Made by a program: the position numbers and the translations under genes. From NCBI RefSeq assembly GCF_040938485.1, contig NW_027270987.1, positions 2,232,001 through 2,296,000 of the forward strand: a stretch of DNA of 64,000 nucleotides, read 5' to 3'. This document shows, in pieces, positions 33,438-63,315 of this stretch. The stretch comes from Diadema antillarum (taxonomy: Eukaryota). How positions within the stretch are numbered: the stretch's first letter is position 1; each line of letters starts with the position of its first letter. Below the pieces are notes generated by a model. The model was given only the letters and a program-made list of their open reading frames with translations. It had not been told where the DNA came from and made no database searches.

Positions 33438-35997
33438 ATATATCCATACATAATCAATATTTTTCCTAGTGCCTATGGCCGATCTTAAGGATGACAGGTA
33501 CTAACCTGTCAATTTAAACTACAAGTTTTATTGGATAAAATATGGTTGCTGTGCTCTTGTTTATAACCAATTATATCTGAATTGTGACTTAAGCAACAAA
33601 TCTGCAAATAAGCATAAAATGAGCCAAAAACTGAGATCCACACCTATGATTGAAATAAACACAAATGTAAACATATGCTGATCAAAGTTCTTTAAAGAAT
33701 TTATTCATTCATTCCATAACTTCAATTCCATTCATTTTCATTCAAAAAACCTTCATTCAAACGCTTCAATTCTTTCTTAAAAGAATACATAGTGCAAAAC
33801 ATAAATTACAAACACTCAATACCCAAAGCTCTTGCACAACTTCTTCGTGCAACATTTATGTGATAAAGCATAATGACTGCCTTGTGTGTTGGTGTATGTG
33901 TGCACGTTTCTGAGAGAGAGAGAGAGACAAGAGAGCTAGAGACAGACAAACATGTAGACAAACGAATATAGACAGACTGAAAGACTAGCAGCAAGGCACC
34001 AGTACTGAAAAAAAGGTTTACAAAGTGACAGACACATAAGAAAGAAAAATTAAACCTGACCAATAGAAAACTCCCGAGTGACCATGACTCCCAGCAGGTG
34101 TTAATTCCATGAGTTAATCCATTATTTGACTTTCTCAAGTTTCTGCAAAAACCATGGAAGTCTACTAATGGGTAGGACTCTACAAAATGACAATTATAGA
34201 TTGGCGACAGAGAATGAACTGTTAGAATACTCATCCTAAAAATACCCTTGTAAAAAAAAATCCTTTTCATTGCATAACCCTATCAACCTTATGAAATATC
34301 ATTTAGATGCCATGATTTAGATTTTAATGTATAAGAAAAATATAGAAGTCATTACCCGGTATACCATTGTATTTTTACCACTGTAACACTGAAAAACTGA
34401 ATCCACCCAAGTGAACAAATGTATTTAGTGCCATCGAGTTTGTAAGACATCAAATTCAGTACTACATGTCCATTATCATCTCTGCTGAGATGACACCTTT
34501 TGAGTATTTTACCCGTATATTAATGAAAATGACACAGTCCATAATTTTGCCATCATTCAGAAGGATACACACATGATTTCACGCAAGAAAAACATCACTA
34601 AGATTGTGAAAGAATTTAAATTGAAAAGGGAAGGTTATTATCTTTTTTTTAATAGCTTTTAAAGCATCACATATTGCGTGTACTGGCCAAATGTCTACAC
34701 TACATAAGCTGAACTCATTTTTTTTTTTGCACAGAAGTACTCAAAAATATTTGGATTTCAATTTATATAAAGGAATTTACATTAACAACAAGCACACTAT
34801 ATCTGATGCAGCATTGCTGTGAAAATATCACTATCAAAGAGATCGAAAATAACGTTCAATTCATAAGCACTACACTGCATTTTTCCCATGAACTCTCGCA
34901 AATGTTGGAGCCCACTATCCCTGAGGTATCATGAACTTTGGGTATCACTTGTGTTTTGTGATTGGTCATTTCAGAACCAATGAAAATATCTGATACTTTG
35001 TTACTGTCAGTATAATATAAGGAATGTAAATTGATTTTCAGGTAGACATTAACAACATGAGGTGTGATCATATCATATGTCAATAAGACAGTCTCCATTT
35101 GAGTATATTGCAGTCTCCCATAAAGTTTAGCAAAGATGAGATCTACCCTTTCCAGTAGAGGTACAAATATCTGTTATCAGCAATTTATCTAAATTATCAA
35201 ATTGCCACCTACAACTGTATGCATTTGCAGTGCAACAGATGTATACAAGTGCGAATTCTGACTGAATTTAAATTTCATTTTCCATTAAAAGAATAAAAAA
35301 TCATCTAAGTATTAATAGAAGACAAAGTTTGAACAGTTGACTACATCAATCTACTTCATCAGAAGTAAGTTATGAGCCATTAGGTTACATTATCACCATT
35401 TGTCATGATATCATATTCTATTACAAGCCAACTCAAGATTTAGACTTAAATCAATCGTCAGGCTCTTATTACACATGGTAGGCAAGGAATACAAAGTATG
35501 TAAAGAATATTAAAGCCTCTCAAAAACACAAAAACAAGCTCCTACACATTTCAGACTTAATATGAACTAATAATCCCATCAAAATATTCAACTTGTTTGC
35601 CTTGCAAAGACATTGAAGTCCAGAAACTCACCCCATTCAGTTACTAGTAATCTATTCATTTGAAAAGGTGTTTTTACAATTATCTGCTTGCCGGTGTGAT
35701 GATACAATTATGTGCATAATCAAAGGTTTATCGTATGAACTTCATCTACAGGTTCTTTGCATAACTTATTGAGCTGTAATTTTGCAAAATTGACAGTCCA
35801 ACAATTGTTCTAATACATTGTTAAGGCAAGGACACTTTCTGTTAGTACATCAATCCCTTTCATGTGACATGTGTGCGTACCACAATTCTAGATAACTTTG
35901 TTTCATGTGATTTTGATGTGTCTTTAATCGTTGATTTTTTTTTTCTTTGGTCATATCTGCACATCAGAGGACACACCAATGCACATGTAGGGAGTAT

Positions 35998-36509
35998 TCA
36001 AGGATAGATTGGGAAAGATTCCATTGCAGTGCTCTCAAACCCGCACTCGTCCACCCCTCGTAGGATTCGGAAGTACCCATTCTCACCCCACGTGTCGCCC
36101 CAGCTGTTCTGCACAATCCAGAACTTCTGTCCCGTCGCTGCATCTGTGCCGTATCCCACCAGGAGCACGGCGTGGTTGGTGATCTCGAAGGGGTTGTACT
36201 TCAGCATCGAATTCTTGACGCCGGTGTGGTGGTAGATCCCACTCTTGTAGTTGAAGAAGTCATCATAGACCATGAAACCAACGGCAACAGGCCCATTTTT
36301 AACGAGAGCGGTACGCATGAGCTCGTCATTGCATCCTCCGTAGAAGCCACCGATGTAGCGGTAGTTGGTGGCAAAGTATCGACGGCAATGCGGCTTCTCT
36401 TTGCTGCACGACATATCTTTACCCTGGTAGGGGTAGCAAGATTCTTCCACCACACCAAAGTCCTCTGCATACTTGCCAGCGGTCAGGTAGGCAAAGCCAC
36501 CCTCACAAC
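35998..36509 (-). CDS. CTSC: Cathepsin C exon 6B (distal catalytic cassette; catalytic His and Asn)
   Basis: 512 nt; acceptor ctgttcag| at 36512-36510. [35 protein letters not shown]. Confidence 0.9.
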
Positions 36510-36744
36510 CTGAACAGCACCATGAACAGATGAACAACACCATTATTAAAGTCTGACACGTACAGTAAAGACCACTGCATGATGACCAATCATTACATAC
36601 TAACTTTTCCATAGTTATATATTATATAGTGTACCACTCGTTCATTTAAGTCAGTCACTTTTGCTTTGGTCAGCAATTTTTTGTTCCCTCTGCTTTACTG
36701 TAATCTTAACATATGCACATCAAAAGTCAAAATACAATAATTTT

Positions 36745-37792
36745 GTTTCTTGTTTGTTGAGGACAGACAATCCATTCAAAGAGTTTTTAAAGTTTCAGTG
36801 CCCCCATCGCTGGATGGAGAACACTACAACAGTTTGTGACGTCACTGCAGGATAACAAGAGAGAGAAAATATACACAATTCAACATATTTTCATATTTCT
36901 AGCAAAGTGAAAGAGCACTTGACTTATACCTCTATCAGGAGGAACAATATTACCCTTCAACATGGGTCAGTATCAAGTCAAAAGAATGTGTGCTTTTCAT
37001 ATAAACTGAAATTTTGTGAATTTTGGTTTCTTTATATTATGGTCCTGCAGTGATGTCACAAACTATTTGTGTTCTCATGCAGCAATGGCGGAACCAAAAC
37101 CTTAAAAATTCTTAAAGGACAAGTTCACCTTCATAAACATAAGGATTGAGAGAATGCAACAATATTAGTAGAACATATCAGTGAAAGTTTGAGGAAAATT
37201 GGACAATCGATGCAAAAGTTATGAATTTTTAAAATTTTTGTGTTGGAACCGCTGGATGAGGAGACTACTACAGCTTGTGAGTCATATGCGTACAACAGTA
37301 TAAAGAAAATGTAAAAGAAAATTCAACATATTTTCACTTTTTTCGCAGAATAAAAGAGCTCTTGACTTGCCTCTTTTCTAAGGCAGGGGGAATGATATCA
37401 CCCATAACATTTGTCGGTAACGAGTCAGGGGAATGTGTACTTTTTTCAAAAGATGGCATTTTGTGAAATTCTCTTTATATTTTCCTTATATTGTTGTACG
37501 CATGTGACATCTAAGTTTTTCATACACTGCAGTAGTCTTCTCATCCAGCGGTTACTGCACAAAAACTTCAAAAATTCATAACTTTTGAACGGATTGTCTG
37601 ATTTTCCTCAAACTTTCAATGATGTGTTCTACTAATATTGCTACATTCTCTCAATCCTTATGTTTATGAAGGTGAACTTGTCCTTTAATCTTTAAACGGA
37701 ATCTCTGATTTTCCTAAAACTTCAATGATGTGTTCTACTAATACTGCTGAATTCACTCAATCCACACATGTACTTGGGTGAGCTTGTCCTTT
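36745..37792. mobile_element. Older degenerate Kolobok-like copy hosting a younger copy
   Basis: Family motifs on both sides of the inner element; right end gagcttgtccttta at about 37790. Confidence 0.65.
37116..37684. mobile_element. Complete non-autonomous TIR element with TTAA TSD (Kolobok-like)
   Basis: TTAA|AGGACAAGTTCACCTTCATAAACATAAGGATTGAGAGAATG ... CATTCTCTCAATCCTTATGTTTATGAAGGTGAACTTGTCCT|TTAA, with long imperfect TIRs. AG..CT ends with a TTAA TSD fit Kolobok. Confidence 0.8.
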
Positions 37793-37834
37793 ATTATCAC
37801 ACAGTAAAAGAAAGAGACGTGGACTTCATATTAC

Positions 37835-38082
37835 CTTGTGCATACTGACTGCATGCCACAACATCCTGCGGGCTGAACACCTTTTTTACCGTGTTGTTGG
37901 TGGCGACCTGGAGTCGTGACGCCAGCATGCCCATGGAAGCGAAGGAGAAGCAGCTCCCGCACTGTTCCTGGTTCCGCACTGGCGTTACGAAGTTCTGACC
38001 GTTCACGTTGCGCCAGTCAAATTCAGCTGGCAGGGCGGAGGCCGCAAGCGCCACGTCAGGAGTTACCGGAATCGCTTGTGGT
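37835..38082 (-). CDS. CTSC: Cathepsin C exon 5B (distal catalytic cassette; catalytic Cys)
   Basis: 248 nt; acceptor aatgcccag| at 38085-38083, donor G|gtaata at 37834. RPQAIP..FDWRNVNGQNFVTPVRNQEQCGSCFSFASM..CSQYAQG. Confidence 0.9.
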
Positions 38083-38521
38083 CTGGGCATTGGGTAATCA
38101 AAAAATGAAACAAGAAATTCTGAGAAGTCACAGACACCTTCTTGTTTAACTGTGTTTTTGTGGGTTTGTTTGTTTTTTAGCAACAAGCTATTATGAACAT
38201 TGATTGGATGATCTTCATTTATGTTTTATATTTCTATCTCACATACAAATGCATGCAGGTGCATCATTCACCCACACATTCTTTCACTCTGCAGTTCGTT
38301 GTTCCTGCACACAACTGTGAGTAGTATTTGATTAAGTGTAGTTGAATAAGCTCCTCTTTTTGTACATCAACCAAGATAGCATTCAAACGGTAAAAAGAGA
38401 CCATAATTTCGTCTCACTTTTTGTCCTCACTGAAATGATTGTGTGAATTCAAATTGTGATCTACACTGTAAACTGTGACCGTGATTTAAATAGAAGCTGT
38501 TGACCCAACATAAAAGTCTTA

Positions 38522-38689
38522 CGGAGTGTTGCAAGAAAGTTGCAATAAATTGCAACTCCTGAAAATCAATCGCAAGTCTTTTAATTGATCAATTGCAAAT
38601 TGTAATCAATTGTAAGACTTGCGACTGAATTTTTGCAATCAACTGCGAGACTTGCAATTGATTGCAACTAGACTTTCTTGCAACGCCCC
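38522..38689. mobile_element. MITE, PIF/Harbinger-like
   Basis: TIRs ggagtgttgcaagaaagt / actttcttgcaacgcccc, with internal palindromic gcaatt repeats. Confidence 0.6.
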
Positions 38690-38717
38690 ATTATTCTTTC
38701 TCTCGTTCTCTCCCAAC

Positions 38718-38728
38718 TCACACATACA

Positions 38729-38792
<64 letters not shown>

Positions 38793-38802
38793 CAGACACA
38801 CA
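38718..38802. repeat. (CA)n microsatellite
   Basis: Direct read. Confidence 0.95.
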
Positions 38803-39339
38803 AATAATGGGCTTAGAATTTATGCAAACTGTAATTTATACACACAATGTTTACTGCAATGACCATGCCTTTCTTTGCATGTCATTGAGAACACTTCTTC
38901 AAATGATTCTACCCTTCCCTTCAAATCACAGGAATCAATCAAACCAGGCAGTACAAATTCTTTGGGTCTTATTTTCTCTGCTGATTTTGGTTTATTACAA
39001 TTGAATAGACAAAACAAAGAAAACATCCATAGCTATCTGTTTATATTGCAACATAGACTTTGCACTCTGAGAGTTTGGCTGTCTTTTTGTCCAATATATT
39101 TTGGCAAATATATGATGTACATGAAAAGTATAACATACAATAATTTTGCACATAGGTATTCTCAAGGAATCATCTTTGTCACAACTGAAAAAAAAGATAA
39201 AAAAAGATAAAAATTAATTCATCTGAGTAAGTTTTATCATTCTATAGTGTATAAATTATACAGTATATTTTAACATTTTCTTGAAATCATTGTCCTTTCT
39301 ATCCACTCTCTTCTCACATTTTAGACTGCTCCTTTTGTT

Positions 39340-39610
39340 TTCCATTTCAATTGCACCATTTCTTTGGAACAGACTCCCCTATCTAATTGTAAACACTCAA
39401 GGTTTTTTATCTAATGTTAAAACTCACTTGTTTAATCAATCATACTGTTTTTCTTTGGTATATTAGATACCCAACTGTATGTATCACAATGTTTATAATC
39501 ATATTCTATATCTCAATTCAACTTTTCAGTTCTGCATCAATGTGCTATGTAAAATCCGTATGAAGTGCTATATAAATGTTAATTACTATCATTAGTATTA
39601 TCATCAATAT
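39340..39610 (+). mobile_element. L2/CR1-clade LINE 3' remnant
   Basis: Translates SIAPFLWNRLP..FLSNVKTHLF, like the ORF2 C-terminal 'AP.LWN.LP..FK..LKTHLF' motif; followed by a gtgctatataaat..(tat)-type tail. Confidence 0.6.
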
Positions 39611-41634
39611 AATCCTTTTCATTGTTGCTATCATTATTGGTATCATCAGCATTATCAATGGGTGGAAACCTTTCTAAACATCAAAAGTTCATTGATGAAT
39701 TCAAAATCCAACTCTTTTTTTTAATACAATGCTAATTGGCTCGAGGCTGAAAGTAGATTCTTCTGTAGCAAGAAAATCAAATAACGAACTCCTTGCAGAA
39801 TTGGATGTGATGCAAAACCACAAACAAAAGGAGTTGCAACAAAAAGACTAGATATGTCACTATGGCGACTGGTATGCCTATGTCATCTTACATTATTAGA
39901 ACTCAGAATAGGTCTGTAGGACATCTTGACAATGGACACAACACTTTCCCACAATTAGAAAAAAAAAATTGCAATGACATGTTGGAAAGTTTGATGGCAC
40001 AAACCCAAATGTCTTTACTGTCAATAAATTTCATGAACCAGATTTCATCTGGATGACTGAAATGTTTCAAAGAGCAAATATTCAGGAATTTAAGCCTTTT
40101 CACTGGACCTTTGACTCTTTAACTTTGACACCACAGCCAACAGCTTTCTTCAAATAATCACAACGGGTAATAACCAGCAACATCCAATTTTCACAATACT
40201 TTGAGCTATTTTCAAAATAAGTGGGAAAATAATGACATGTTAACATTTTCACTTGGCCTTTAACCCCATGGCAAAAAACTTTTAATCTTTGTAAATCCTC
40301 TAAAGAATAAATCCTTATATGTCCAACTTACAGTAATATTTCAAATACCTAGCAGTACTTGAAGAAAATATTATTTTCATGATAAGATGGTTGTTCTAAA
40401 CCTCATATCAAAATATATCTTCAGCACACTTTGATTATACTGGCATCGTGAAAATTAACAAGGTGTACACAATCTTTTTTATAACATTCCCTGAAATACA
40501 TTACATCATACTAAATCCTTGCATAAGCTAATTTCTAGACAAACCTGATTTTGTTAGAAAAATATAATGTTTATTAACATATGATTTTTTGAAGCCTCTG
40601 AAATACATCTGTAAAATAAAGAAACAGCTGATGTATGATTTGGACGTGTGTCACACTTGTAAAATTCTGCTGGTCAAGAAATTGCTAACATTTTCCGTCA
40701 TCTTATCAGTCCATAAAAGATTTGTCTTTTTGTTATACCTGAGCATCAGGTATGAAATCAAAAGGGCATTGTGTGCAATACATCCATATTGATAGTAAAA
40801 ATGATTTCAAAAATTGAATTCAATTCAATTCAATTTTTATTTCACGAACATATAGATATCACTTTTTGGGGGGTTACAGAAAATAAGGTGCATAAAACTT
40901 TAAAGTGTGTTAAAAAAAAATTGTTGACATATTAATCATCTCCTGTAAGGACGGAAGTGATCTTTTATCTTATCAGGAAGCTTTCAGCACAATTAGGAAG
41001 ACTTGATAGCTTTGTAAAGAGGGGAAGGCTTGCAATCAATGCTTCCAATACTGCATTAGGCCAAGTAAAAAGAGAAATTAGTTTCTTGTTCTCACATGCT
41101 TCCTATTTTTGTGCCGCTTCAAATTTTTCACTGTTTACAATTTTTCAAATGCACAACCCCGCTCACATCTTTTTAGAGATGCCACTTCCACTTTATAGTA
41201 TTTACTACTTTTGGGCAGCCGAAAAAAAGAAAGCATCGGAAATTCATCTAGGCTCTACCTATCACGATTTAATGAATGCATTGTGTTAGAATCTCTAATT
41301 TTGTGTATAAACTGTTGATCATATCACGGCCGCCAGCAAAGAATCCTACACAGCAGCCTCTATATAGTACTGTGGACTTGGACAGCATACTGTTGAGAAC
41401 ATTAACTGAACGTTCTTTGTGAATGGACAAGTTTCAACACACACTCATACTCGTGTGTATGCATATGCATAAGACCTCCCGCATCACCTCTTTCCGAAAA
41501 TCCGGTCAAGAAACTACATTCTTTTTTTCACTTTGCCTTATCATTCTGAATTTTCATTCTTTTTTTTCTTTTTTTTTAATAGGAAAGATTGGATACATTA
41601 TAAATTTTCAATTGTGAACCCATTTTTTGGAATC

Positions 41635-42146
41635 TCATTGGATGATGGGGAAAGACTCGGCAGCAATGCTCTCGATGCTGCATTCATCGGTGCCTCGGCG
41701 GATGCGGAAATACCCCTCCTCTCCCCACTGTTCCCCCCAGCTGTTCTTCACGCTCCAAAACTTCTCCCCTGTCTTCGCGTCTGCCCCAAACCCAACTACC
41801 AGCACCACGTGGTTGGTGATCTCGAAGGGGTTGAACTTGAGCTGAGCATTGCCGATGCCGGTGTGGACGTAGATGCCCCCTTTGTAACTGAGGAAGTCAT
41901 CGTAAACCATGAAACTGACAGCGATGGGTCCATTCTTGACCAGCTGAATTCGCATCAGTTCCTCGTTGCATCCTCCGTAGAATCCTCCAACGTAGTTGTA
42001 GCCCGTGGCGTAGTATCGCCTGCAGTCCGACTTCTCCTTGGAGCAAGACCGTTCCACTCCTTGGTAGGGGAAGCAGGATTCTTCCACCACCCCAAAGTCC
42101 TCTGCATATTTCCCTGCCACCAGATAGGGGAAACCCCCTTCACAGC
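41635..42146 (-). CDS. CTSC: Cathepsin C exon 6A (proximal catalytic cassette; catalytic His and Asn)
   Basis: 512 nt; strong poly-T acceptor ..catgtatag| at 42149-42147. [35 protein letters not shown]. Confidence 0.93.
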
Positions 42147-43749
42147 CTATACATGTTCACAAAAAAAAAAAAAAAAGATATCATAATTAATGAAGCTTCC
42201 TGGATTCTTGTTAGGAATTGTACTAGAATTTGTGGCGGATTTTTTTTTTCTTGAAACAAAAGAAAAAAATGAAAGGAAAATGAAAGGGGGCACTTGTGCT
42301 ATAGTGGTACCAGAAAAATTGCACTGAAACCTTATTTTCTTTACTTGTATTTTTTTTTTATTGCTTGTCAGGTGATTAACCCAGAAGTGGCACCAGAAGT
42401 ATTTTTTTTTTGCACCCCGCCCCCTTTACGGAATTCCTGGATCCGCCCCTGAGAATTTCCCAATGCAAAATGAAAAGGAAGTACAACATCACCTTACAAG
42501 TACTGTAGTCCCATTGTGAACCATATTAAACATAACTTTATTTGATGCACATTGTGCAAAGTCTTTTTCAGAGAGGTAGGTTAAGTAAATTTGCTTGCAA
42601 TGTACTCCAGTACCTAAAGTAATTGAATAAAATCATGGAAACTTCACAGAAGATTGAATAACACAGAAAGCACATGTTTATAATAGATTAATCTATTTCC
42701 TGATTTCTTTATTTGCAATTAAATGATTCATGAATAGAATGTAAAACTATCAGCCATAACATATCTTTGTTGTTTCTTTGTATTATACCTCCCAATTCAC
42801 ATTGTAGTATCTATCATGTGATATCTTCACGCCCATGAGCATGAATAGGACGCCATATCCAATCACACTTCCTGACAACTTGAATAGGTTTCAGAAAATC
42901 ATCCTTTCATTCCTCTAGTTGCAGTTTCTGCTTAAAATGAAACCTTATTCATGTTTCAGTTTCTGTATTAGATGAACCCCTGTCCATGATTTCCTACATG
43001 TGAGTGACCTCCAGCAAATGTTGGTCTATATTTGAGTTCGCTATAAGAGGATTTAGCGCAGCACCATACAAGGTTATATTCATCTTTCAGCAACATTCAT
43101 TGTCCAATAAAGATATCAGTTTATATTCAATGGCATAGTTACATGTACTTGGACTCATGCAGTCAATACATCTAAGAATGTCTCACATTGCCAACTACTT
43201 GGATGGCAAATTAATCAAATCCACACTTTCGGTGATTTTACGTGACAAGTTCAAGAGCTGTATTTGCAGTTGTGTAACAAACACAGAAGATTACATTGAA
43301 TTCATTTCTGTTCCATCTCTAATCTAGTCCCTGTGGCCATTCTCACGATTTCTGATTGATCGATTTATTGGTTTGTTGATAAAAACATATACAGTAAAAC
43401 ATAGCAGCGAACAGGATGAATTGCTGTTTACATTTTGTATGCTTTACAATGATTCAAAAAAACATTGAATTACACACTGAAAACTCGAGGTATAGATATA
43501 AAACAATTGATAAATATGGACTTATCAGTATGTTTTGTATGTACAAACTAAAAATTTCATTGGTATGTCAAATTATCAAGATATACATAAAAAAGCAACA
43601 TGAATCTGGTTTCTAACTTACTTTTGATGTATAACAACAGCAAAAAACATTCATTTTCTACTGACTTCCAAGATATTATAGGGTTTATGAGTTTGACGTA
43701 CATGAGTTTTACAACAAAGGAAGCAGCAAGTATTGTATGCGTGCCATAC

Positions 43750-43997
43750 CTTGAGAATATTCGCTGCACGACACCACATCTTGAGTAGAGAGGACTAGCT
43801 TCATGCTGTTGTTGGTTGCTACGCGGAGGCGCGACTCCAGCATCGCCATGGAGCCGAATGCATAGCAACTGCCACAAGACCCCTGGTTACGGACGGGTGA
43901 CACAAAATTCTGCCCACCGACGTCACGCCAGTCAAATGACTCCGGAAGTAAGGAGGCCTTCTGTGCAACCTCAGGTGTAACGAGGGCTGGTTTGGGT
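43750..43997 (-). CDS. CTSC: Cathepsin C exon 5A (proximal catalytic cassette; catalytic Cys)
   Basis: 248 nt; acceptor gtgacag| at 44000-43998, donor G|gtatgg at 43749. [43 protein letters not shown]. Confidence 0.93.
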
Positions 43998-44712
43998 CTG
44001 TCACACATACACGAAGTGCCCTTCAATTGCTTTGAATTCTTATGTGTGTCTGTGTGTCTGTGTGTGTCTGTGTGTGTTTATGTCTGTAAGACCTCTTCTA
44101 AAGCTCTCCTGTACCAAAGAAGCCCCTGCATTGTCATTTCTCAGTTTTTATTCCTTTTCTGAATAAGTTGTATTTATAAGGCACATCACTGAAAACAATT
44201 TGTAAGTACAGTGTAGCATAAATTTTAAGTCTATAACTATGATAAATCTCTGTTTTGATTCTTTATGAATTATTGGAATAACAAGGTGTATAACAGATGA
44301 GGTTGTATTTTGAAGAAGTTAAAGAATTACTCCCAAAAGCTCTATCAATGTATGGTACTGATTCCACGAAAAAAAAATCAATATGAAGCTTTGCTACAGC
44401 AAATCATTCATCTTATTTATAGATTGTTTTCATGGTACTAACATCAGCCACAGCTGTCTTTCAGTTAGTCACTGCATCACTGATATGCAGTTACATTCCC
44501 TGCAAAACTAGCCTGCGATAAAGATCAAGTAAAATCTAATCTGAATGGGTGATGTTTATAGTGGCACACAACAAGTACTTGATCGTGTGAGGGATGAAGG
44601 TTTTCTGCTTGATTTTGTGTCTATTATGAAAACTCAGGAAAGACTTGTGTATGTGCAGATCGATGTGAGAGTTTTGAGTTTTGAGGTGACAAAAGACAAA
44701 AGCCCCTCTTCC

Positions 44713-44898
44713 TTAGCCCGTTGAGGATGAGTCCTGAGTATACTGGGTCAGGTGTCTATGGGAAATGCGTGTTGTAGCAAAATCAAACCGTCCTCAATGG
44801 GTTAACCCTATACATGAAGACTAGTCCTTCGTATACTCAGGCAGGTGTCTATGGGAAATGCATGTTATAGGAAAATCAGCTCATCCTCAACGGGTTAA
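44713..44898. mobile_element. Two tandem ~90-bp piggyBac-like MITEs sharing a TTAA
   Basis: ttag|cccgttgaggat..gtcctcaatggg|ttaa|ccc..tcctcaacggg|ttaa; CCC..GGG ends with TTAA. A third copy lies at 56774-56872. Confidence 0.7.
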
Positions 44899-45158
44899 AG
44901 AGCATGGGTGTGACTTGTATCCTCACTGCTTTGTGATAACATACCATATACAAGTATTCCTGCTCTGGTGCAAGTTGCCAACTCCCAAACTGTCCTATAT
45001 CAAATGTGCTTGCCACAGACAGACTTTTTAGACATGGTACAGTGTTGTACTGTAGCATGGGGATTCCATCCAATAGGAAAGCTGACTTTTCTCTAGTTGG
45101 GGATCCCCTACATGTATGTGTATTAAGTGAGAACCAGGTACTGTGGGGAGAGTGTGAA

Positions 45159-45545
45159 GGTGTCATGGTTGAGTGGATAAGAGCGCTCATCTCCAAATGA
45201 CATGAGCACGGTATGGATGGGTTCATGAGTTAGAGTCCAGATGCCAAGCCTGGCATGTTTGCCCATCAGCAAATAAGGCACTTTGTCCACATTGCTGTTC
45301 TCCACCCAGGAGTATAAAAGTTTATGTTGGTTAATCAGCATGTGCGCGCTTATAAAATGGCTGTGACTGTCTGGAATGCTCCCCAGGGAGTGGAGAGTGA
45401 ACACTATGTCAGTGCTGGTTGGAAATAATGTATCCAGTAACCGGGGTAATAATAATCTGTAAAGTGCATTGAGATGCTTAACAAGAGTAAAATGAGCTAT
45501 ATAAAAACTAGCTAGTATCATCATTATTTTTATCATCATAGCTTT
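45159..45545 (+). mobile_element. tRNA-derived SINE with L2-type tail
   Basis: A-box-like tggttgagtggataag head; body ..ggaatgctccccagggagtggaga..ccagtaaccggggtaataat; tail tgtaaagtgcattgag..gctatataaaaac..(atc/att)n. The body recalls Deu-type SINEs (from memory, unverified). Confidence 0.6.
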
Positions 45546-45809
45546 ATCACTGATCTCTATGTAAGTATATGCACACAGCTGAGGAGTCTTACTTTGAGTT
45601 AAACATTACTGATGAGCATACACTTTGATGCTCATATTTATTGACAGGCAATTCTATTTTAGCAGGCATTTGCTAGTTGTTGTTTTCCAATGTACCCCAG
45701 CGGTAGCGAATGAAAATCAATTCAATCAGGCCAACATTCTCTCCCCACACTACAGGGTCTATGAAAGCACTGATTGAAAGTGGGAATGGTAATGACCCCC
45801 CGGTCTTAC

Positions 45810-45977
45810 CTCATGGCACCGACGTGATTGTTCGCTCCTGCTCGCCTCCGCATTTCCTCCACCGTGTATCCCTCGTGTTCTGGATACACAGCGGCACGCC
45901 ATGACTTCTGGACTCTGTTGATCTCGGCCACCATCCTCTCATCGTTGTGGTACATCATCTGGCTGAAGTCCGGGTGT
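45810..45977 (-). CDS. CTSC: Cathepsin C exon 4 (propeptide)
   Basis: 168 nt; acceptor cctcatcag|, donor AG|gtaaga. HPDFSQMMYHNDERMVAEINRVQKSWRAAVYPEHEGYTVEEMRRRAG, like the CTSC 'Y..N..FV.AIN..QKSW.A..Y.EYE..TL..M.RR.GG' segment. Confidence 0.92.
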
Positions 45978-46411
45978 CTGATGAGGGGAAAGAGAAAAGG
46001 ATGAATGCAAATTTTGTCCCTGACATGAAATCACAGACAAATAGACACATTCACACTCAAAATTTGGGGTGAAGATTTTGTTCGTGTTTCCCATATGTCT
46101 CCAAAAACAAGATTATTGCTATCAATTACCAAACGGAAACCACTTTTGAACAGTTTGGGGGCTTTCTGACAATGGTTCTGTTTTGATATCTGTTGGGTAC
46201 CAGTACCATAAATAAAGGTTATCAAACACACAAATAAGCACTCATGAAGATTTCAATACATAAAGAGAGTGCCTTTAAATGGGCAAATGTACATTTTGGC
46301 CCTCATTCCACTTCAGAGTGTGATAAACTTCATGAAGAAACATTCAAGTGTATCAGAAATATACAATTTGGGATTCAGAAGGGTTCAAATAGAACATTTA
46401 TAAAAATCTTG

Positions 46412-47563
46412 AAACTAGAAATGTCGCTATGGCAACAGGTATGCCTCCGCAATAATGCATGTTTCTCCTAATAGGTCTATAGTACATGTGGACAATGTGT
46501 TATTATATTTTCACAAAATTGGCAAAATATTAAAACAACATGTTTGTCGCAATTGTGTTGAATGTTCACCTTCCTTGACCTAGGTTTATGGATGAATGGG
46601 AGAGCATGTATTTGGGGATTTTAGGACTTTTACTTGACTTTGACCCTTTCATAAGTCTATGCATTGAGTAATTTTCAAGGTATGGAGAAAAAGTGCAATT
46701 TCTGTATTGAATACCGGTAGTATATTGTTAGGCTACCATTTTCATCTGGCCTTTGACCCTTGACCTTTGACCCTAAAATTCATAAGAGAATCACTGTCAG
46801 GCAGAACATGCATAAATATGTACTCTAGGTTTCAAGATAACTTGAGCCACTTCCGAGATATGGGGGAAGAGGTAAAGTTCAGCACTTTCACTTGATTTTT
46901 GACCTTTGACCTTTTTGGCAAAAAAAAAAAAAAAAACTTCCCAGAGAATCTCTATTGGGTTATACATGCATATGCCAAGTTTAAAAAAAAAAAATAATCC
47001 TGCATGCATTGCATGAATAATGAGGGAAATAGTTAAATTTTGAAGGGTTGCCCCTGACCTTTGACCCCATGAACCCAAAATTCCCTAGATAATCACTGCC
47101 AGTCAGTACATGCACTATACTATGTTCCATGAAGATACCTTGAACAATTTCCAAGATATGGAAAAAAAAGTAAAATTTTAACATTTTTACTCGACCTTTA
47201 GACCTTTGACCTCATGACCCCAAACTTTCACCAGGGAATCTTAATGGGGTGATACATGTATACATCAAGTTTCAAGAAAATATCTTCAGGCATTGCATAG
47301 ATATGGGGGAAATAGTGAAATTTTGTGCATTTGACCTTGACCTTTTGGCCTTTGACCTTGAGCATGTGCACCCAAAAGTTGATAGGCACAACTTCACCCC
47401 CTAATACACAGACATGCCAAGTTCCATTAGGATACCTCAAAAGGTTTTTTAGTTACGCTGTCCACAGAATTCATTACGGGCGGACAGAAGGACGGACGGA
47501 AGGACAGACGGACAACCCGAAAACATGCCTCCAGCACCACTTCGTGGTGGAGGCATGAAAAAA
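46412..47563 (+). mobile_element. Helentron-associated non-autonomous element (HINE/DINE-1-like)
   Basis: 5' aactag; subterminal atgcctccgc at 46441; internal gacctttgacc repeats; (GGAC)n; 3' hairpin atgcctcc..ggaggcat followed by an A run. Confidence 0.75.
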
Positions 47564-48969
47564 CAAATCTTGAATTTTTAAAATCTGAATTTTCAACTAA
47601 GTAACTGCACATGGTTAAATATGCATTGCAGTATCCTTGCCTTGTACATTGTAAGGGGTGTGGGGATGGGAGCTGGTGATGTGAAAAGGTGTTATAAAAA
47701 GAGGAAACAGTACACATACTACGGAGGTAAGTTTAAATACTCTAAACATTCCACGCATGGTCACTTTCACTTAAATCCCCATCAAAGGCTTTTTCTTCCT
47801 TTTATCACCTTAACTCCTTTTATCACCTCTTGTTCTGTCTTTGTTTCATTTCCTCTTTATCTAATGCACTCATTCATCTCTAGTTTGAATTGATATTACA
47901 CTGTCTCTATTGGTCTTTAAGAATGTTTCAGTTGCACATTAGCATTTAATTTCATTTTATGGTATTAAAATATGTTCTTTCTTTTCATAGCCTTCAAAGG
48001 TATGATCAATATGACTCTCTCTTACAAGGACCATTTACATTTCTTAGAGTTTGACTTTTAGAACTTGGAAAAAAAAAAGCTTGCTTAAACACAAGCTTTA
48101 TTCCGTACACAGTTTATTATCATTGCTCTCATTAAATTCCTTTTGAACGTTAGACCTCACTTCCTTGCACATTTATCATCATCTCAGTTTTCTTTTATTC
48201 ACGTGGGAGGAACTGTTCATGCTAGGACATTATGGTAGAAAGAGAGAGAGAGATTTTTTTTTACAAGATACTGATACTCTCCCACCTCTTTGATCTAAAG
48301 TGGACAGGCATTGTAAAGGAAGTGGTGCTTATTAAAGTGCAAACTAGGTTGAGACCGGGAGAGTAAAAGACATTTATCTCTTCCAAAAACAAACACTGCT
48401 CAGCTTGCTATGGGCCATTAGCCATGTTTTAAGATGGTGTCAATGCTACAGTTATTGATATCATAATCCATCATAATAAATGCAGCATGCTAAGGAATAG
48501 TTTCCTGTAAAAGTGGAAATTTTCGCAGTGGTGAAATTTTTGCGCATTTCGCGCAATCAGAAGCTAGTGCGAAAAGCATCCAAATATTTTTGCTTGCTGC
48601 ATGATCCAGTAGGTGATGTTTTAATTCCGCGGAGTAACACGCAAATCTCTTTTTGCCCAGCCAAGCGCGAAATATTAACAACCTGTCCGCGTCTGTTGAC
48701 TTCCAAAAGAATCTCATTTAGGGGCATGGGAGGCTCTCTGAGAATTGCCGGAGGAACGGGGTAACTGTCTGTCACTTCAAGAAAACAGCAAGTTCATTTT
48801 CCAAAGCATCTGCTAAGAGTTTGGTAGAACGCATGACATAGTCTTCAACATGTATCTTCATGTTCTCTCAGGCAGCCCACATGTAGACTATATCAAGGCT
48901 TTTGGGATGTCTTTGTGGCCTTGCCTTGCATCAATCCAAAGTTTGGCCTCCATGGTGATCAATTCTTAC

Positions 48970-49097
48970 CTTTCCTTCTTGTAGGTGTATGCCTTTGCAT
49001 AACCAGATGAAACTTTCTTGCCAACGTAGCAGGCCCAGTCAGATCCAACAACATTGTGAGCCCACCCAGGCAGAGTTTCAGAACAGTTCATCGTCAC
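48970..49097 (-). CDS. CTSC: Cathepsin C exon 3 (exclusion domain)
   Basis: 128 nt; acceptor tttcag|, donor AG|gtaaga. VTMNCSETLPGWAHNVVGSDWACYVGKK. Confidence 0.92.
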
Positions 49098-49131
49098 CTG
49101 AAACATTATATGAATTTAGAAAATAAAAAAT

Positions 49132-50140
49132 AAACTAGATATATCGCTACGGCTACTGATATGCCTCCGCCATAATGCATGGTTCTCCTAATAGGTCTAT
49201 AGTACAATGTCTTGACAATGTGTGATGACAGTTTCACACAATTGGCAAAATATTAAAATGACAGGTTTGACACAAATGTGCTGAATGTTCACTTTCCCAG
49301 AACTAGGTTCAATTGGATGAATGATTAAAATGTCAGAGTGCAGGTATTTGGGGGACTGATGATTTTTACTTGACTTTTGACCCTTTTATAAGTTTATGCA
49401 TTGAGTAATTTTCAAGGTATTGAGAAAAAGTATGATTTCAGTATCAAATGGGAAAATAGCATTATCTAAACCTGGCCTTTGACCTTTGACCTCACAGTTC
49501 CAAAGAGAATCACTGTTAGGTTGAACATGCATAAATATGTAAGTTTCATGATGATACCTTGAGTTACTTTCGAGATATGGAGGAAAAAGTGCAATTTAGC
49601 ACTTTCACTTGACCTTTGACCTTTTGGCAAGAAACTTCCCCAAAAATATATATTGGGTAATACATGCCATACATCAAGTTTAAAAAAATAAAACCTTCAG
49701 GCATATTGCATTTTAAGGAAAGTAGTGATATTTTGAGGAATTGACCTTGACCTTTGACCCCCTGACCTTTGACCCATGACCCCCAACTTCCCTAGATAAT
49801 CACTGCCCATCGGTACAAGCATATATACTAAGTTCCATGAAGATACCTTGAACCATTTGCGAGATATGGAGAAAAACATGAAATTTCAATTTTTTTTTTC
49901 CACAAAATAACCTGAGACCTTTGACCTTTGACCCTGTGACCCTAAAATCCACACAAAGTATTATCCCCCAAGGATATACCCTCATACCAAGTTTGATGTA
50001 AAACCACTACACGGTTCTTGAGATATCGACAAAAACAAAACGGGACGGACGGACGTACGGACGGACGTACGGATGGACGGACGGACGGACGACCCGAAAA
50101 CATAATGCCTCCGGCCACTTCGTTGCGGAGGCATAAAAAA
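49132..50140 (+). mobile_element. Second HINE/DINE-1-like copy
   Basis: Same 5' end (aactaga..tcgcta..atgcctccgc..ctcctaataggtctatagtac), (GGAC)n and 3' hairpin atgcctccg..cggaggcat as 46412-47563. Confidence 0.75.
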
Positions 50141-50835
50141 GATCATGAACTAAAAAGCATTTCTTTTTCTTTTTCATTTTTTTAATAGCACGATTTAATA
50201 ACACCTGTATTATCGAAGGCTATGTCACGCATTCTGCATCTGTTTTCTTGAACTCAAGTCATGACTCCTTCCACACCCCACCCCATTCCTTGCTGAGAGA
50301 AGGCAACCTTATAAAGGGCTTTGTAGGTTTTAGTTTTATCCACAATGTTTGATGTGTTGTTGTGATTTCATACATATTATACGTTTCTCTGCCTATACAC
50401 AGTTACTTTTTTCCGTACCTTGTAAATAATGGTTTTGAGGAAATTGCATCTTTTGAGCTCTGCATTTTAGTTTCCCCTCCATTTTCAACATTATCTAGCT
50501 TTCTCAACTTATTGTGTTTATATTATATTTTGATGTATGCAGACTATGTATATTGCTTCTTTTCATATGTATTGTATACCGATATTCTTCGCTGAAAATG
50601 AAATGAAATTAAAAAAAGACAGCATGTTATCAGTATTTGTTTCCTGGCAAGGTGTATTTCTCAGCAAACTCAGATAATAGTCAATTTTTATCTAATTTAA
50701 ATTCCAAACAGGGTGCACATTTTGAACTGCCACAAAGATTACTCCACTAGGTGCTGCCAACTGAGAAATCCCATTGGCATCTTACACAGGGCACTTGGCA
50801 GTGTGAGTATAAGAATTAAACAACACAGTTCCAAC

Positions 50836-51005
50836 CTCAGATCCAGATCCGCTGTACTTGGAAAAGGCAAAGTATTTGCGGTTGTTGAGGACCACTTCAA
50901 ACCCCTGGTTATAGATGAGGGTCCAGAAACCTTTGGTACCGTACGTGGCATCGACAGCGACGTCAGGAAACATGAGCTCAACTGTGACTGTGTCAGTCAC
51001 TGGAC
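50836..51005 (-). CDS. CTSC: Cathepsin C exon 2 (exclusion domain)
   Basis: 170 nt; acceptor ttttctgacag|, donor GAG|gttgga. G..GFWTLIYNQGFEVVLNNRKYFAFSKY signature. Confidence 0.93.
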
Positions 51006-53159
51006 CTGTCAGAAAATACACGATGGGAAAATGACTTCTAATACTGCAAGAGTGTGTGAGTATAAACATTGTAAGGGTGGAGAAGGCTGGGCAGCCATGT
51101 CCTCTAACAGGGTATTCTATAAAAAGTCATGCTTTGGGCTGCTGTGGCATCTAAATAATTTGGAGGAATGGGATCATAGCTCAGGCTTCAGTCAATCACA
51201 AGGCAATATTGTATGTACGCCTTTGTAAGTGCAATGCAATGTAACTCAAACAACCCTAATTCTTATTGCACTGCAATTCTGAGTATAATTATCATTGTCA
51301 TTAAATAATAGTAGAAGTACACATTTGTAGTAACTATGACTAAGTTTACTATATAAACATTGTGCCTGTCTACAACTAACCCTCCTAAGATCTCAGCCAT
51401 CGATCGCACAATCGCCATCGGTGAAAATTAGCACATATGTTACCTGTGACTTAATCTATCAGAACCAGAGTTTTGAAAAAAAGAATTTACATTTTCATTT
51501 TCCAAATTTTATAACTATTAATAATGCTACTATATGCATGAAATCATATGTTTTGCTCTAGATCAAAAAATAAAGCTCTTAGAATTCTAATTTTTAGTGT
51601 AAACATTCTTGAAATAGCAAATACGTATATCTGGTATCAAAATTAATTTCTCATGTATTCCTTTGTTTTCGACCTTTTGTTTTTGTTACTTTCTTTGCAA
51701 AATTTATCACAGAACTTTTTCAAGCATAATTATGCTAAAATAAAATGAACTGATTTCAGCCAGTGGAAGTGAAAATAATCATACCTTTTTGAGAAAGGTG
51801 AGAAAAATCCAACTGCATTGACCTTGTGCAAAAAAAAAAAAAAAAAATCCTGTTTTTGAGCCATTTTCAGTCTGACGAGCATGTATAAAAGGTTGTGCAG
51901 CATCATAACAGTATGCCTGATTTTTGCAAAAATTGGTGTTATGAGATGTGCGAGACTAGAAAATAAAAAGTCAGTGAGCAGTGTGGTCAATTACATTGTA
52001 CATGTATTTTGTGCAGAGGAATGGTCATGGAAAATGTCAAGGGGGCGTGATTCAAGCCCCTGGCCATTTTAGGGTTAAAGAAGTAACACAGAATTCACTT
52101 TGAATCAAACAACAGAACAATTTTGTGGGCAATAACTGAGCAAAATTTGGAAATCAGACAAACACTAAAGATGTCACGAATATTTGTGTCAATACAGCCA
52201 TAATCTCAAAATACTGTAGCCCATGCAATCAATATCATTCACATGTACATCTTGTACATTGCAAAGAAGTCATTTACTTATTTCTGCATGTATTATGCTC
52301 ATGATTTTGAAGAATTTGCATGCATATTATGTCAAATGTGATTTCCATGGATATGTATACTGTATGTCAAATGTGTATGAAGATTAGATCTTTATACTCA
52401 GTGTAACATCATGTAAATCAAGAAATGTATTATAAACCTCGCATTGCAACATCAACCACATACTCTTTTTTCTGTTTGGCTGCAATACAGTTTAACATAT
52501 TTTTGAGATTGAGCAACTGGCTTGCTGTATTCTGACGAATCTAATTGTAAAATTTCTTAATTTCCATTGCAGCCTACAGTACAAATACATTTTACTTTGA
52601 TACCTACTTTGCAGTTGTATTAGTCTAGAGAAGTTGTAGTACATTTAAGCAAGTACATTTTTATGTATATAATTGTCCAAAAATGACATTAAAACTGCAA
52701 TGTAGTAGTAAGGTATTCCTGAGACAAGACCCATGAATATCATTGAGGGGGTCACAGGGCTGTCAAACTCGGTGAACTCTACAGACCAAAACTTGTCAGG
52801 TGCTCTGGTCAGGTCATGGCATTGGCGATAATCACCATGGGTTAGTGATTACCAACCTCAGATTGGCAACAATAAAAGGAATAGCATATTTACTGAGATT
52901 CAAATGGTAGTTATATAGTGTTTGATTTCATTTTATTTTGAAATTTCCATCTGTATTTTGTCTTCAGCTCTGGGCTCAGCTTTTTGTTTTCCTGCTCCTT
53001 TACTATAGTTATCTTCATTTTTTTCAAAGCCATTTTTGCTCTTCCTTTTCTCACATTTTTTCGCTCTGCAATCTAAATGGATATGATACACGTAAGCCTG
53101 CCTAGCAACCAGAAAATTGTGGTGTGGAAAATCCCATCCCCGCCCACCCAAGGATGTAC

Positions 53160-53322
53160 ACTGTACACTTGACCGAAAGATCGGTCTGTATCTGTCCGTC
53201 GGGGAATGTTCCGCGGAGACTGCGTCTGGCTTCATGGATCCCCTCTGTCTACGGAGGACAGCGTTAATGGCAAAATATAAAAGAATCCTCCGGACAGACG
53301 GATCTTTCTGTCTAACTGTACA
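53160..53322. mobile_element. Probable MITE
   Basis: Imperfect inverted ends tgtacacttgaccgaaagatcggtctgt / acagacggatctttctgtctaactgtaca. Confidence 0.45.
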
Positions 53323-53880
53323 CCTGCTATATAAAGTTACCAATGATTTTTATTGTGTAATTTAATTACTCTAATTACTGAATAATTGGTGTTTATTTGC
53401 ATCGATGAAAGACAATTGTCAATCAGCAGCAACTCTTCCCTTGCGGCAAATTCCTGCTTTAGATCTAACATGTTGTTAGACTCTACAAATGTATACCGGT
53501 ACTAAATTACCGATTGGGGGCCATGAGGTGCCACATGAATCCAGCCACTTCCTCAGAGCTTATCCATCCATAATGATCCAAGATGTCAACATTTCCCTTT
53601 CCCTACTTTCATTGTCATATATATAGATCCCTAATTATACAGTAGAATAGCTTTATTTGAATTTAATTTCATTTCATTTTCACTGTAATTTTGATCTCCT
53701 CTGAACATGGCATTTAAACCTTATGGTATGCCTTGAAAATAATTTCGTTGACAACAGCAGCGGAATGCTAACCATCAGGGTAACATGATTATGCGGTGAT
53801 CAGATTACTGTATGAGTGTTCAGTGTTGACATAGTTTACAGTAGACCGTCTGGTCTACACTGGTCTAGTGCCCCACCAAC

Positions 53881-54037
53881 CTGGATTTGTACAATCAAGC
53901 GTGTTGTCCCCGCCATATCCACTGATCTCAAATGTCCACAAACCAGCAATGTCTTCATAGGTACAGTTAGCCGGGGTGTCAGCTGCTGCGAAAGATAAAG
54001 TAATGGCGATTAGGATGACTGCCCGAACATCCATCAT
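53881..54037 (-). CDS. CTSC: Cathepsin C exon 1 (signal peptide and start of the exclusion domain)
   Basis: MMDVRAVILIAITLSFAAA|DTPANCTYEDIAGLWTF, with the conserved N-terminal Asp; donor G|gttggt. Exons 1-4 plus 5 and 6 total 1383 nt = 460 aa for either cassette. Confidence 0.93.
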
Positions 54038-54726: not shown

Positions 54727-54849
54727 ATGTTAGCAGCCATCAACAGATTTCTTGACTGGCTTAAAAGCCTTTTCTGGAAGGAAGAAATGGAGCTTACATT
54801 GGTTGGGCTGCAATACTCGGGGAAAACAACGTTTGTCAATGTGATTTCG
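54727..54849 (+). CDS. ARL8: ARL8 exon 1
   Basis: [41 protein letters not shown] (P-loop); donor |gtaggt. Confidence 0.95.
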
Positions 54850-56773
54850 GTAGGTGTTAGCTATCTGCATCTCTACTGCATACTGCAATGCAAGTGCATG
54901 TGTACTAATGCGTATGAATAAATTTTACACGTATGACTACAACAGTAAACTTTATTCTTTCAGTATCAACTGCATGCTGCATGCTGCATAGCCTAATTAA
55001 ACATGAAATCGATTCTAGTGTCAATAAAATTTCCTCACTGTCCCCATTCGATGATGCTCTTGTTTATCAATTTTCTTGATTATGATCATGCCAAGAAATG
55101 TGTCACTGTTTACCACTGTTAGACCCCCTCTACCATTGAAAATACCATGTCTACGTAACGTGAGACCCTAAATTTACATTTGCCCAGATGTAATTTATTA
55201 TAGGCTAGTATAGCTGATCCAAGAGGCTGGTGTAAGTAATTACAGTAAAAATTTAAGTCTGTAAAGTTGGAAGACTAGTAACTAACTAGTAACTAACCGC
55301 TAGTAACTGCGGCAGTAAGCGGCCGTGCAACATACGGCATCGGTAATATACCATTAAACACAGCATTGCACTGTTAGTGTTACATGCACACTACACACAC
55401 ACTAACACACTACCAATCAACAAAAACCAACCGATAAAATGGGCACGATCTGTAATAAAAGTGAAATTTTCTCACCTAAAGGCTAAATGACAACATATCA
55501 CATCCAAAAAAAAACAATTTCGGTACTTCTTAACATAACAATTAAGAAATAATGCTCCGAGAAACTTGATTTTTTGTCGTTTACTCGATGTTCATGGATT
55601 TTATGACAGATATATGGCGCCATACAAATGCTGTGGATCATCATCATCATCATCATTTTGAAAACATATCCTCACATAAAATAGGACTTTCGCGAGCCGA
55701 TGTGGGCCGCCATTTTTGTTCGGAAAGTGAATGTTACCATCGAAAAAATTGAGAAAAACACGAGAAAGTCATCAACAACACCGCCAGAATTGCGATCTTG
55801 TTTGCTGCCAATGCATGCACGCTCGCTATTTTCACATGCTTTCGCAACAGGCAATGTTCGTGAGACATGTGAATGCGTTCAGCTAGAGATCGCGGAGCAC
55901 GCGCGTATTACATAGGGATTGTACATCGTGCCGCAAGCAGAACCACTACGTCGCATACTGCCCTTATTGGCAAAAATTGTGCTAGGTTTTGCCCTGGTAA
56001 ATCATGAAAACTGCGTTTGTCAGTGGTAAATTTATTTTATGAAAAACATTGCGTTAATGAATAATCTTGTCTATGATATATGAAATGGTTGAAAATAATT
56101 TGCCTGATTTGTTTACAAGTTGGAAAAACCCTTAATAATTTTTAAACTGCCGCAAACTGGATATTTTACTCTACACGATGCCTTCTGTTTGTGTCAAAGA
56201 AAAAAAAAAGAGGCACATTGCACTGCTTTCTATTTATTTGGCATTGATAGGCCATTGGGCATTGTCACATGCTTGTTAAAAGATCCTCCCTGACCCTAAC
56301 CCCGGGGCACTCCTTGTACACAGTCAGTTAGGACGCTTCGCATTCGGACTGGTCACAGTTGAGTTACCCTGACCCTTGAACCCTGTCTTGTATATCTAGA
56401 GACTATAAAGCAAAAATGCCAAGGTTCGACTTCCTGTGCCAAAATTTAACCAAAGGTTTTACATGTAGCAGCCGGTCGAATTTTGTAAGGCGTTATGGTC
56501 AAATCATGGGCAGCTTGCTTTACAGTACATCTTACAAGAATACTTGCATTGCTTAGATTTTCTAGTACCAAAGGTAATCATAATTCTAGTGATCATGGCC
56601 AATAATTAATAATGTAGAAAATAAAATCACTGGAATGCATTTGAACATATTATTTTATTCTTACAGTGTCTTAGAACATCCAAAATGAATGCGTGCTGAC
56701 ATGCTCAGCAGGGTAGGCCTCGTGTATCCATATTTCTGACCTACACTGTATTTCAGTCCATGGACTCAATTTC

Positions 56774-56872
56774 GTAACCCATTGAGAACGAGTCTCGAGT
56801 ATACATGTACTTTGGCAAGCGTCTATGGGAAATGCATGTTGTAGCAAAATCAGCCCGTCCTCAATGGGTTAA
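56774..56872. mobile_element. piggyBac-like MITE (same family as 44713-44898)
   Basis: gtaa|cccattgagaac..gtctatgggaaatgcatgttgtagcaaaatcagcccgtcctcaatggg|ttaa. Confidence 0.7.
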
Positions 56873-57363
56873 GCCAAGGTTTTTTATTTAAATTCCCTTG
56901 TGTATTTGGGCCTTCATGCAGCATGAGCACATGTGGTGAACATACAGCATAGTTATACATTTTGTTTATTTCTCGGAATGAGTCTGTTCATTGAGTTGGC
57001 AGATGGCAGTTTTGCAGAGTATTAAAATCAACATGCAGGTATTATTACTTTATTGATAAGCATTGATTGTGTCAACTGTTTATGGCTGATGGAATATCTT
57101 AATTTACATGTATATCACTTTCTTTTAAGGGTTTCTTGAAAAAAAAATCATGTGTTGCTTGAATTTCAGTTTTAATATTTGTTGATTTTTGTTTTCTTTG
57201 ATGTATGATTTGGTTGGTTGTTTGTGTGTTTTTTATTTATTTTTTGTTTTGTTTTTGCTGTGATTGGTCATGTTGAATAAATGGATGAAATTACAGAGAA
57301 TTTTTATCATGCCTTATGACTTAATGTTCTCCTACTTCCCATCCCATCCCATCCCATTTGCAG

Positions 57364-57444
57364 TCAGGACAATTTAGCGAAGACATGATACCCACAGTAG
57401 GCTTCAACATGAGGAAAGTCACGAAAGGAAATGTCACAATAAAG
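57364..57444 (+). CDS. ARL8: ARL8 exon 2
   Basis: [27 protein letters not shown]; ttgcag| and |gtaagt. Confidence 0.95.
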
Positions 57445-58685: not shown

Positions 58686-58759
58686 CTCTGGGATATCGGA
58701 GGACAACCAAGATTCAGGAGTATGTGGGAAAGATACTGCAGGGGGGTCAACTGTATTGT
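58686..58759 (+). CDS. ARL8: ARL8 exon 3
   Basis: [25 protein letters not shown]; ttgcag| and |gtaagt. Confidence 0.95.
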
Positions 58760-59938: not shown

Positions 59939-60032
59939 GTACATGGTAGATGCAGCCGATCACGAAAAGTTAGAAGCATCACGGAATGAGCTGCACAATC
60001 TTCTCGACAAACCACAATTGCAAGGAATTCCA
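59939..60032 (+). CDS. ARL8: ARL8 exon 4
   Basis: [31 protein letters not shown]; ccatag| and |gtaagt. Confidence 0.95.

Positions 60033-63312: not shown

Positions 63313-63315
<3 letters not shown>

Follow-up and report, generated by a model that had tools for sequence, protein, structure and literature searches.

The window analysed here, a 64-kb stretch of the Diadema antillarum genome (contig NW_027270987.1), carries on its minus strand a cathepsin C gene (CTSC, encoding dipeptidyl peptidase 1, DPP-I) in which four upstream exons are followed by two tandem copies, A and B, of the terminal exon pair. We consider it probable, at roughly 0.85, that this is one gene with a single promoter, in which exon 4 is spliced to either terminal cassette to give two proenzymes of 460 amino acids (aa). 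Cathepsin C enzymes are tetrameric, chloride-activated dipeptidyl aminopeptidases, and their specificity arises from the docking of a single exclusion domain on a single papain-like domain. DPP-I, a current drug target, is the activator of granule serine proteases.

A permissive tblastn search of the window with the whole protein (word size 2, E up to 10) returned one match each for exons 1 to 4 and two each for exons 5 and 6, while no other CTSC-like match was present in the window at E < 1. This bore out the claim of an earlier note, made from the sequence alone, that exons 1 to 4 occur once and exons 5 and 6 twice in tandem. The coordinates, lengths, phases, splice sites and open frames which that note had given for the four cassette exons matched base for base on the minus strand. 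In the order of transcription, the gene is composed as follows.

53881..54037, minus strand: exon 1, with the ATG at 54037, the signal peptide and the start of the exclusion domain (tblastn, 100%).
50836..51005, minus strand: exon 2, exclusion domain (sequence reading, tblastn and Pfam).
48970..49097, minus strand: exon 3, where the exclusion domain ends and the propeptide begins (sequence reading, tblastn and Pfam).
45810..45977, minus strand: exon 4, propeptide; its lone donor GT at 45809-45808, in phase 2, is common to both cassettes.
43750..43997, minus strand: exon 5A, about 17 final propeptide residues and the N-terminal portion of the papain-like domain, which includes Gln and the catalytic Cys; acceptor pyrimidine-poor.
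41635..42146, minus strand: exon 6A, which completes the papain-like domain (His, Asn), carries the stop codon and is the last exon of isoform A (XP_071486247.1).
41575..41580, minus strand: ATTAAA, candidate poly(A) signal of cassette A, 55 nucleotides (nt) past the 6A stop (consensus pattern scan).
38083..41634, minus strand: spacer between 6A and 5B, 3.55 kb, equal to the intron before 5B in isoform B; contains a (CA)42 microsatellite at 38719-38802.
37835..38082, minus strand: exon 5B, homologue of 5A with equal length and phase; acceptor pyrimidine-rich.
35998..36509, minus strand: exon 6B, homologous to 6A and last exon of isoform B (XP_071486246.1).
35923..35928, minus strand: ATTAAA, candidate poly(A) signal of cassette B, 70 nt past the 6B stop (consensus pattern scan).

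Exons 1 to 4 have the phases 1, 0, 2 and 2. The cassette exons measure 248 and 512 nt in A and B alike and can be aligned between the cassettes without a gap. An AG stands before each of the four and a GT after both 5A and 5B, and a stop codon closes 6A as well as 6B; the coding frames of 5A, 6A, 5B and 6B contain no internal stop. Joined to either cassette, exons 1 to 4 give a coding sequence (CDS) of 1383 nt, that is 460 codons, as had been claimed for both products. Within the 3.55-kb spacer, tblastn found no copy of exons 1 to 4, and the open reading frames (ORFs) of the spacer showed nothing protease-like. The runs of N in the window (11204-11344, 23697-23888 and 25235-25367) all lie far from the gene, in agreement with the previous statement that the interval between 6A and 5B is gap-free.

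Profile searches recovered the complete exclusion domain (PF08773) at residues 20-137 of the two isoforms (E 6e-42 and 9e-42; profile positions 1-121 of 121). The Asp at residue 20, the start of the stretch DTPANCTY, aligned with residue 1, corresponding to Asp1, of both human (3pdf_A) and rat (1jqp_A) DPP-I. The papain-like domain (PF00112) was recognised with E 9e-60 in the B form and 1e-59 in the A form. Residues Q246, C252, H403 and N425 of cassette B aligned with Gln228, Cys234, His381 and Asn403 of human DPP-I, and the catalytic Gln, Cys, His and Asn are the same in cassette A; the alignment to the human enzyme and that of A to B thus upheld the proposal that both cassettes retain these four residues. 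Domain limits and the roles of Asp1, which anchors the N-terminus of the substrate, and of Cys234 and His381 were taken from the literature (PMC11337848). The Diadema protein is homologous to human and rat DPP-I (3pdf, 1k3b; 1jqp) over its full length (E 8e-163), with Asp1, exclusion domain, propeptide and catalytic residues all aligned. Whereas the human and rat structures have one catalytic domain per chain, the Diadema gene offers two alternative ones, and both cassettes encode three additional residues at the site that separates the human heavy and light chains. Each cassette codes for the last ~17 residues of the propeptide and the entire mature papain-like domain, i.e. the equivalents of heavy and light chain. 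Residues 1-207 are shared by the two isoforms, and the swapped part comprises 253 of the 460 residues.

The cassettes are an old duplication with strong purifying selection on their coding parts. Amino-acid identity between A and B is 64.6% in exon 5, 73.4% in exon 6 and 70.8% overall, the first two values confirming a manual estimate of about 65% and 73%. At the DNA level identity amounts to 69.8%, distributed over codon positions 1, 2 and 3 as 79%, 83% and 47%. Nonsynonymous divergence (dN) was 0.19-0.21 and synonymous divergence (dS) 1.8-2.6, which is saturated, so that dN/dS comes to about 0.09-0.11. The ratio of about 0.1 is not near 1, the value that the earlier note had named as contrary to its proposal of an old duplication under purifying selection; that proposal agrees with this ratio, with the selection on B seen between two Diadema copies and with the gene layout of Strongylocentrotus purpuratus (both below). 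The introns and the 3.55-kb spacer shared only CA/GT microsatellite matches between the cassettes, as expected from the observation that the introns show no visible similarity.

Comparison of four A and six B urchin sequences revealed 139 invariant columns among 254 and 11 columns with fixed differences between A and B. The latter include the human-numbered positions 230, 235, 236 and 238 around Cys234 as well as 382 beside His381. These differences fit, without proving, distinct catalytic properties of the two domains. Since 11 differences are fixed across urchins and several adjoin the catalytic Cys and His, the two enzymes would be expected to differ in specificity or regulation.

Both predicted products are present in public gene models. 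The translation of exons 1-4, 5A and 6A equals RefSeq XP_071486247.1 (isoform X2 of D. antillarum 'dipeptidyl peptidase 1-like') in every residue, and that of exons 1-4, 5B and 6B equals XP_071486246.1 ('dipeptidyl peptidase 1-like isoform X1'), likewise in every residue. The two isoforms are placed on JBFRCO010000099.1 (GCA_040938485.1) with a common start base and spans of 18,040 and 12,403 nt, which are the distances 54037-35998 and 54037-41635 in the window. Since the RefSeq products are identical to those of the window, the gene structure is already part of the public annotation. Full-text literature searches yielded no article in which alternative catalytic cassettes were described for cathepsin C, and none for vertebrates either. 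The statement that no such case had been described for CTSC therefore stood for papers and failed for public gene models, which hold both isoforms. The Diadema cassettes are annotated in public models without description in papers, and are an as yet uncharacterised case of a type of alternative splicing that is already known. In the congener Diadema setosum, the RefSeq protein XP_072174351.1 ('dipeptidyl peptidase 1-like') has 152 aa and stops at the exon 3/4 boundary; the gene is therefore annotated in fragments there.

The one-to-two arrangement, for which a search of related genomes had been suggested, is also present in S. purpuratus (Spur_5.0, L004), where exons 1-4 occur once and are followed by 5A, 6A, 5B and 6B. 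Its two products have a common start, the A-type X1 being 459 aa and the B-type X2 458 aa long. RefSeq (Gnomon) lists corresponding pairs for S. purpuratus (XP_011676840.1/XP_001201161.2), Lytechinus variegatus (XP_041459307.1/XP_041459308.1) and Lytechinus pictus (XP_054751556/XP_054751557). The members of each urchin pair are identical up to residue ~208-210 and 71-73% identical thereafter. They correspond to the window gene as orthologous A and B isoforms with a common break near residue 208; the pairs themselves are automatic models without functional description. Furthermore, a Logan RNA-seq contig, SRR6173504_20122 (L003, 2748 nt), contains an uninterrupted ORF of 458 codons that joins the exclusion domain to a B-type domain, together with a 3' untranslated region of 1.27 kb. 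This contig directly attests a spliced B-type mRNA in a further echinoid. A B-type exon 6 is also present on the ENA contig ERZ26222911. Use of either copy with shared upstream exons is thus represented by RefSeq models in five urchin species and one Logan mRNA, while one Diadema model splits B off. The idea that B is expressed by splicing exon 4 past cassette A is supported, in that it matches RefSeq X1, the X1/X2 pairs of other urchins and the Logan contig.

In a tree of catalytic domains, the A sequences of Diadema and the camarodonts formed one clade (98/94), and the camarodont B sequences grouped with the SRR contig (100/98). Trees constrained to hold all B sequences together, or A and B together, scored slightly better than the free search, and neither was rejected, with p-values of 0.54 and 0.55 in the approximately unbiased test (p-AU). 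Together with the shared genomic position, the tree places the duplication before the split between Diadema and the camarodonts. The data are compatible with an origin of the cassette duplication within the echinoid lineage.

Splicing of the two cassettes might proceed as follows. If the exon 4 donor were joined to 5A, the transcript would end after 6A; if it skipped cassette A and were joined to 5B, the end would follow 6B. Because 6A closes with a stop codon and lacks a donor, the two cassettes cannot be combined in a single frame, and the choice falls at the exon 4 donor. Two proenzymes of 460 aa would result, sharing residues 1-207 and differing in catalytic domains of 71% identity. The choice may reflect competition between a weak proximal acceptor with a proximal poly(A) site and a stronger distal acceptor. 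Over 35 nt, the pyrimidine fraction of the proximal versus the distal acceptor is 0.43 versus 0.69 in Diadema and 0.51 versus 0.86 in S. purpuratus. A pyrimidine-poor proximal and a pyrimidine-rich distal acceptor would agree with regulated use of the distal cassette. A TG-rich microsatellite at 44043-44087 lies 46 nt upstream of the 5A acceptor, and it is because of this microsatellite that the sequence upstream of the acceptor is purine/GT-rich.

Four points weigh against a single gene with alternative terminal cassettes. The poly(A) signals of both cassettes are matches to the consensus ATTAAA only. Diadema B was placed weakly in the free tree, where it fell with crinoids at 60/80. Isoform use in Diadema is predicted by gene models, and these may rest partly on homology to S. 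purpuratus. Finally, a second Diadema contig, JBFRCO010000094.1 (L001), holds a collinear copy of the region with 87-99% nucleotide identity and several indels, and on this copy the same pipeline annotates an A isoform of 459 aa and places B in a separate gene of 255 aa. This protein had been met in a search with exon 6B as a 98% identical D. antillarum sequence; its model (XP_071485947.1, L001:10001-11525) starts at an ATG located 8 nt upstream of the 5B acceptor.

The copy on JBFRCO010000094.1 is most likely the other haplotype. Its spacer contains about 4.4 kb plus about 1 kb of sequence in excess of the window copy. Two inverted stretches of ~400 nt with near-identical ORFs (L001:2137-2523 and 6147-6557) bound the ~4.4 kb of extra sequence; the window copy lacks this sequence, which resembles an inserted transposon with terminal inverted repeats.

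The 255-aa model embodies the best-surviving alternative, in which cassette B forms a gene of its own further downstream, driven by a separate promoter, starting at the ATG 8 nt upstream of 5B or in a hidden first exon within the spacer, and encoding a papain-like protease without exclusion domain. It is in favour of this explanation, which we regard as unlikely, that RefSeq models B in this way on one contig (XP_071485947.1 starts with MPRPRP) and that the in-frame ATG is found in both Diadema copies. However, in the 255-aa product the signal peptide is missing, as is nearly the whole propeptide, and papain-fold (C1A) enzymes of the secretory pathway need both. Moreover, S. purpuratus lacks this ATG, the frame ahead of its 5B containing a stop and no Met. 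The B-type domain is joined to the exclusion domain in S. purpuratus, in the two Lytechinus species and in the Logan mRNA. Exon 5B of Diadema has retained an AG acceptor and a phase that fits the exon 4 donor. Exon 1-4-like sequence is lacking in the spacer. We therefore rejected a stand-alone gene for cassette B as unlikely, given a product without signal peptide, a non-conserved ATG and the fit of 5B to exon 4; the 255-aa model is probably a mis-split gene model.

Slightly less probable still is that cassette B is no longer used in Diadema, in which case it would be a recently silenced relic and the X1 model a projection from other urchins. B does differ by 8 aa between the two Diadema copies, compared with none for exon 6A (4 synonymous differences, dN 0), and it is more diverged from camarodont B (72-74% identity) than Diadema A is from camarodont A (80-81%); isoform X1 in Diadema is, as said, predicted by its gene model. 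Yet the 25 nucleotide and 8 amino-acid differences between the B copies correspond to dN 0.014 and dS 0.11, giving an omega (dN/dS) of about 0.12, and because of this value cassette B is judged to be still under purifying selection in Diadema. None of the 25 changes introduced a stop or a frameshift, the AG and GT sites of B are intact in both copies, the four catalytic residues are kept and the acceptor has a strong tract. That the tandem cassettes are an assembly or haplotype artefact can practically be dismissed: the assembly does hold the entire region in two diverged versions, one on contig 94 and one on contig 99, which indicates that haplotypes were not fully collapsed, but the identity of A and B is only 70%, their synonymous sites are saturated and their introns unrelated, they follow each other as A then B in both assembly copies, i.e. 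on two independent contigs, and S. purpuratus shares the layout.

A single CTSC gene with alternative terminal cassettes resembles the tandem exon duplication-derived isoforms described for other genes, which are ancient, well expressed and recurrent (PMC9741552, PMC4465641, PMC8373072); none of these three papers mentions CTSC. As in tandem-duplicated alternative exons, the urchin cassettes are homologous, equal in length and phase, ancient and both under purifying selection, and the isoforms differ only in the homologous region. The classic cases, however, concern one internal exon and mutually exclusive splicing, whereas in urchin CTSC the duplicated unit consists of two terminal exons with their own stop and poly(A) region. 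The choice in urchins would thus also involve 3' end formation, and the swapped unit is a whole catalytic domain. Since before the divergence of Diadema and the camarodonts, two papain-like domains must both have fitted one exclusion domain and propeptide. The A/B pair therefore offers a ready comparison for separating residues that set dipeptide specificity from those constrained by the interfaces with the exclusion domain or within the tetramer. For annotation, the lesson is that one pipeline modelled cassette B correctly on the window's contig yet split it off as a spurious 255-aa gene on the other.

The assumption that CTSC is normally a gene with a single catalytic domain failed for several invertebrate lineages, as indicated by RefSeq pairs and by duplicated exons in genomes. 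CTSC X1/X2 pairs in RefSeq that differ in a C-terminal block of 60-84% identity were found for Acanthaster planci, Patiria miniata, Branchiostoma floridae, four Mytilus species, Aplysia californica and Lineus longissimus. In three genomes the last coding exon was located as tandem copies.

L005 13002-13508 and 15611-16123: last coding exon of A. planci, two tandem copies (genome).
L006 13809-14165 and 14975-15334: last coding exon of B. floridae, two tandem copies (genome).
L007 28943-29263 and 29338-29679: last coding exon of M. trossulus, two tandem copies, the second 75 nt past the first stop (genome).

The copies are 74-82% identical in these three species, and X1 and X2 use one each. The protein pairs suggest the same last-exon duplication in Patiria, three more Mytilus species, Aplysia and Lineus. 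A tree of 120 C-terminal columns grouped most pairs by lineage (Aplysia 99/97, Branchiostoma 93/89, Mytilus 82/76, sea stars 99/94), which suggests repeated duplication or concerted evolution; in this tree, urchin A fell with the sea stars at 83/86. Convergent origin of tandem-exon substitution events has been reported for other genes (PMC9741552, section 15). In the non-urchin cases only the last exon is duplicated (about 107-171 residues, with His and Asn) and the half that contains the catalytic Cys is shared, whereas urchins swap both halves. The exchange of the entire mature domain makes urchins the extreme case. A general, undescribed tendency of CTSC is suggested by the smaller duplications in sea stars, amphioxus and molluscs, which concern the last exon.

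More tentatively, and with less than even confidence, we propose that tandem alternative terminal cassettes, which exchange all or part of the catalytic domain while the exclusion domain stays constant, arose repeatedly in CTSC, in no fewer than five invertebrate lineages (urchins, sea stars, amphioxus, mussels, and Aplysia and/or Lineus), with enzymatically distinct isoforms in urchins. If this were true, the urchin isoforms could differ in S1/S2 preference, in pH or halide dependence or in tissue use, and they might mix within one tetramer. The CTSC family would then constitute a natural experiment in re-tuning an exopeptidase by splicing.

Upstream of CTSC, an ARL8-like small GTPase gene (Pfam Arf) starts at 54727 on the plus strand (54727-64000 of the window). 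It is arranged head to head with CTSC, with 690 nt between the start codons, and the divergent pairing of CTSC with an Arf-like gene recurs in S. purpuratus (L004), where the two are 608 nt apart. A bidirectional promoter may serve both CTSC and the ARL8-like gene, which are lysosome-related. Introns 3 and 2 of CTSC each contain a copy of ~800 nt of the same dispersed repeat (window 46412-47212 and 49132-49920, respectively). The two copies are 77-89% identical, have the same orientation and lie 2.7 kb apart, and related fragments with the motif TGACC(T/C)TTGACC recur nearby.

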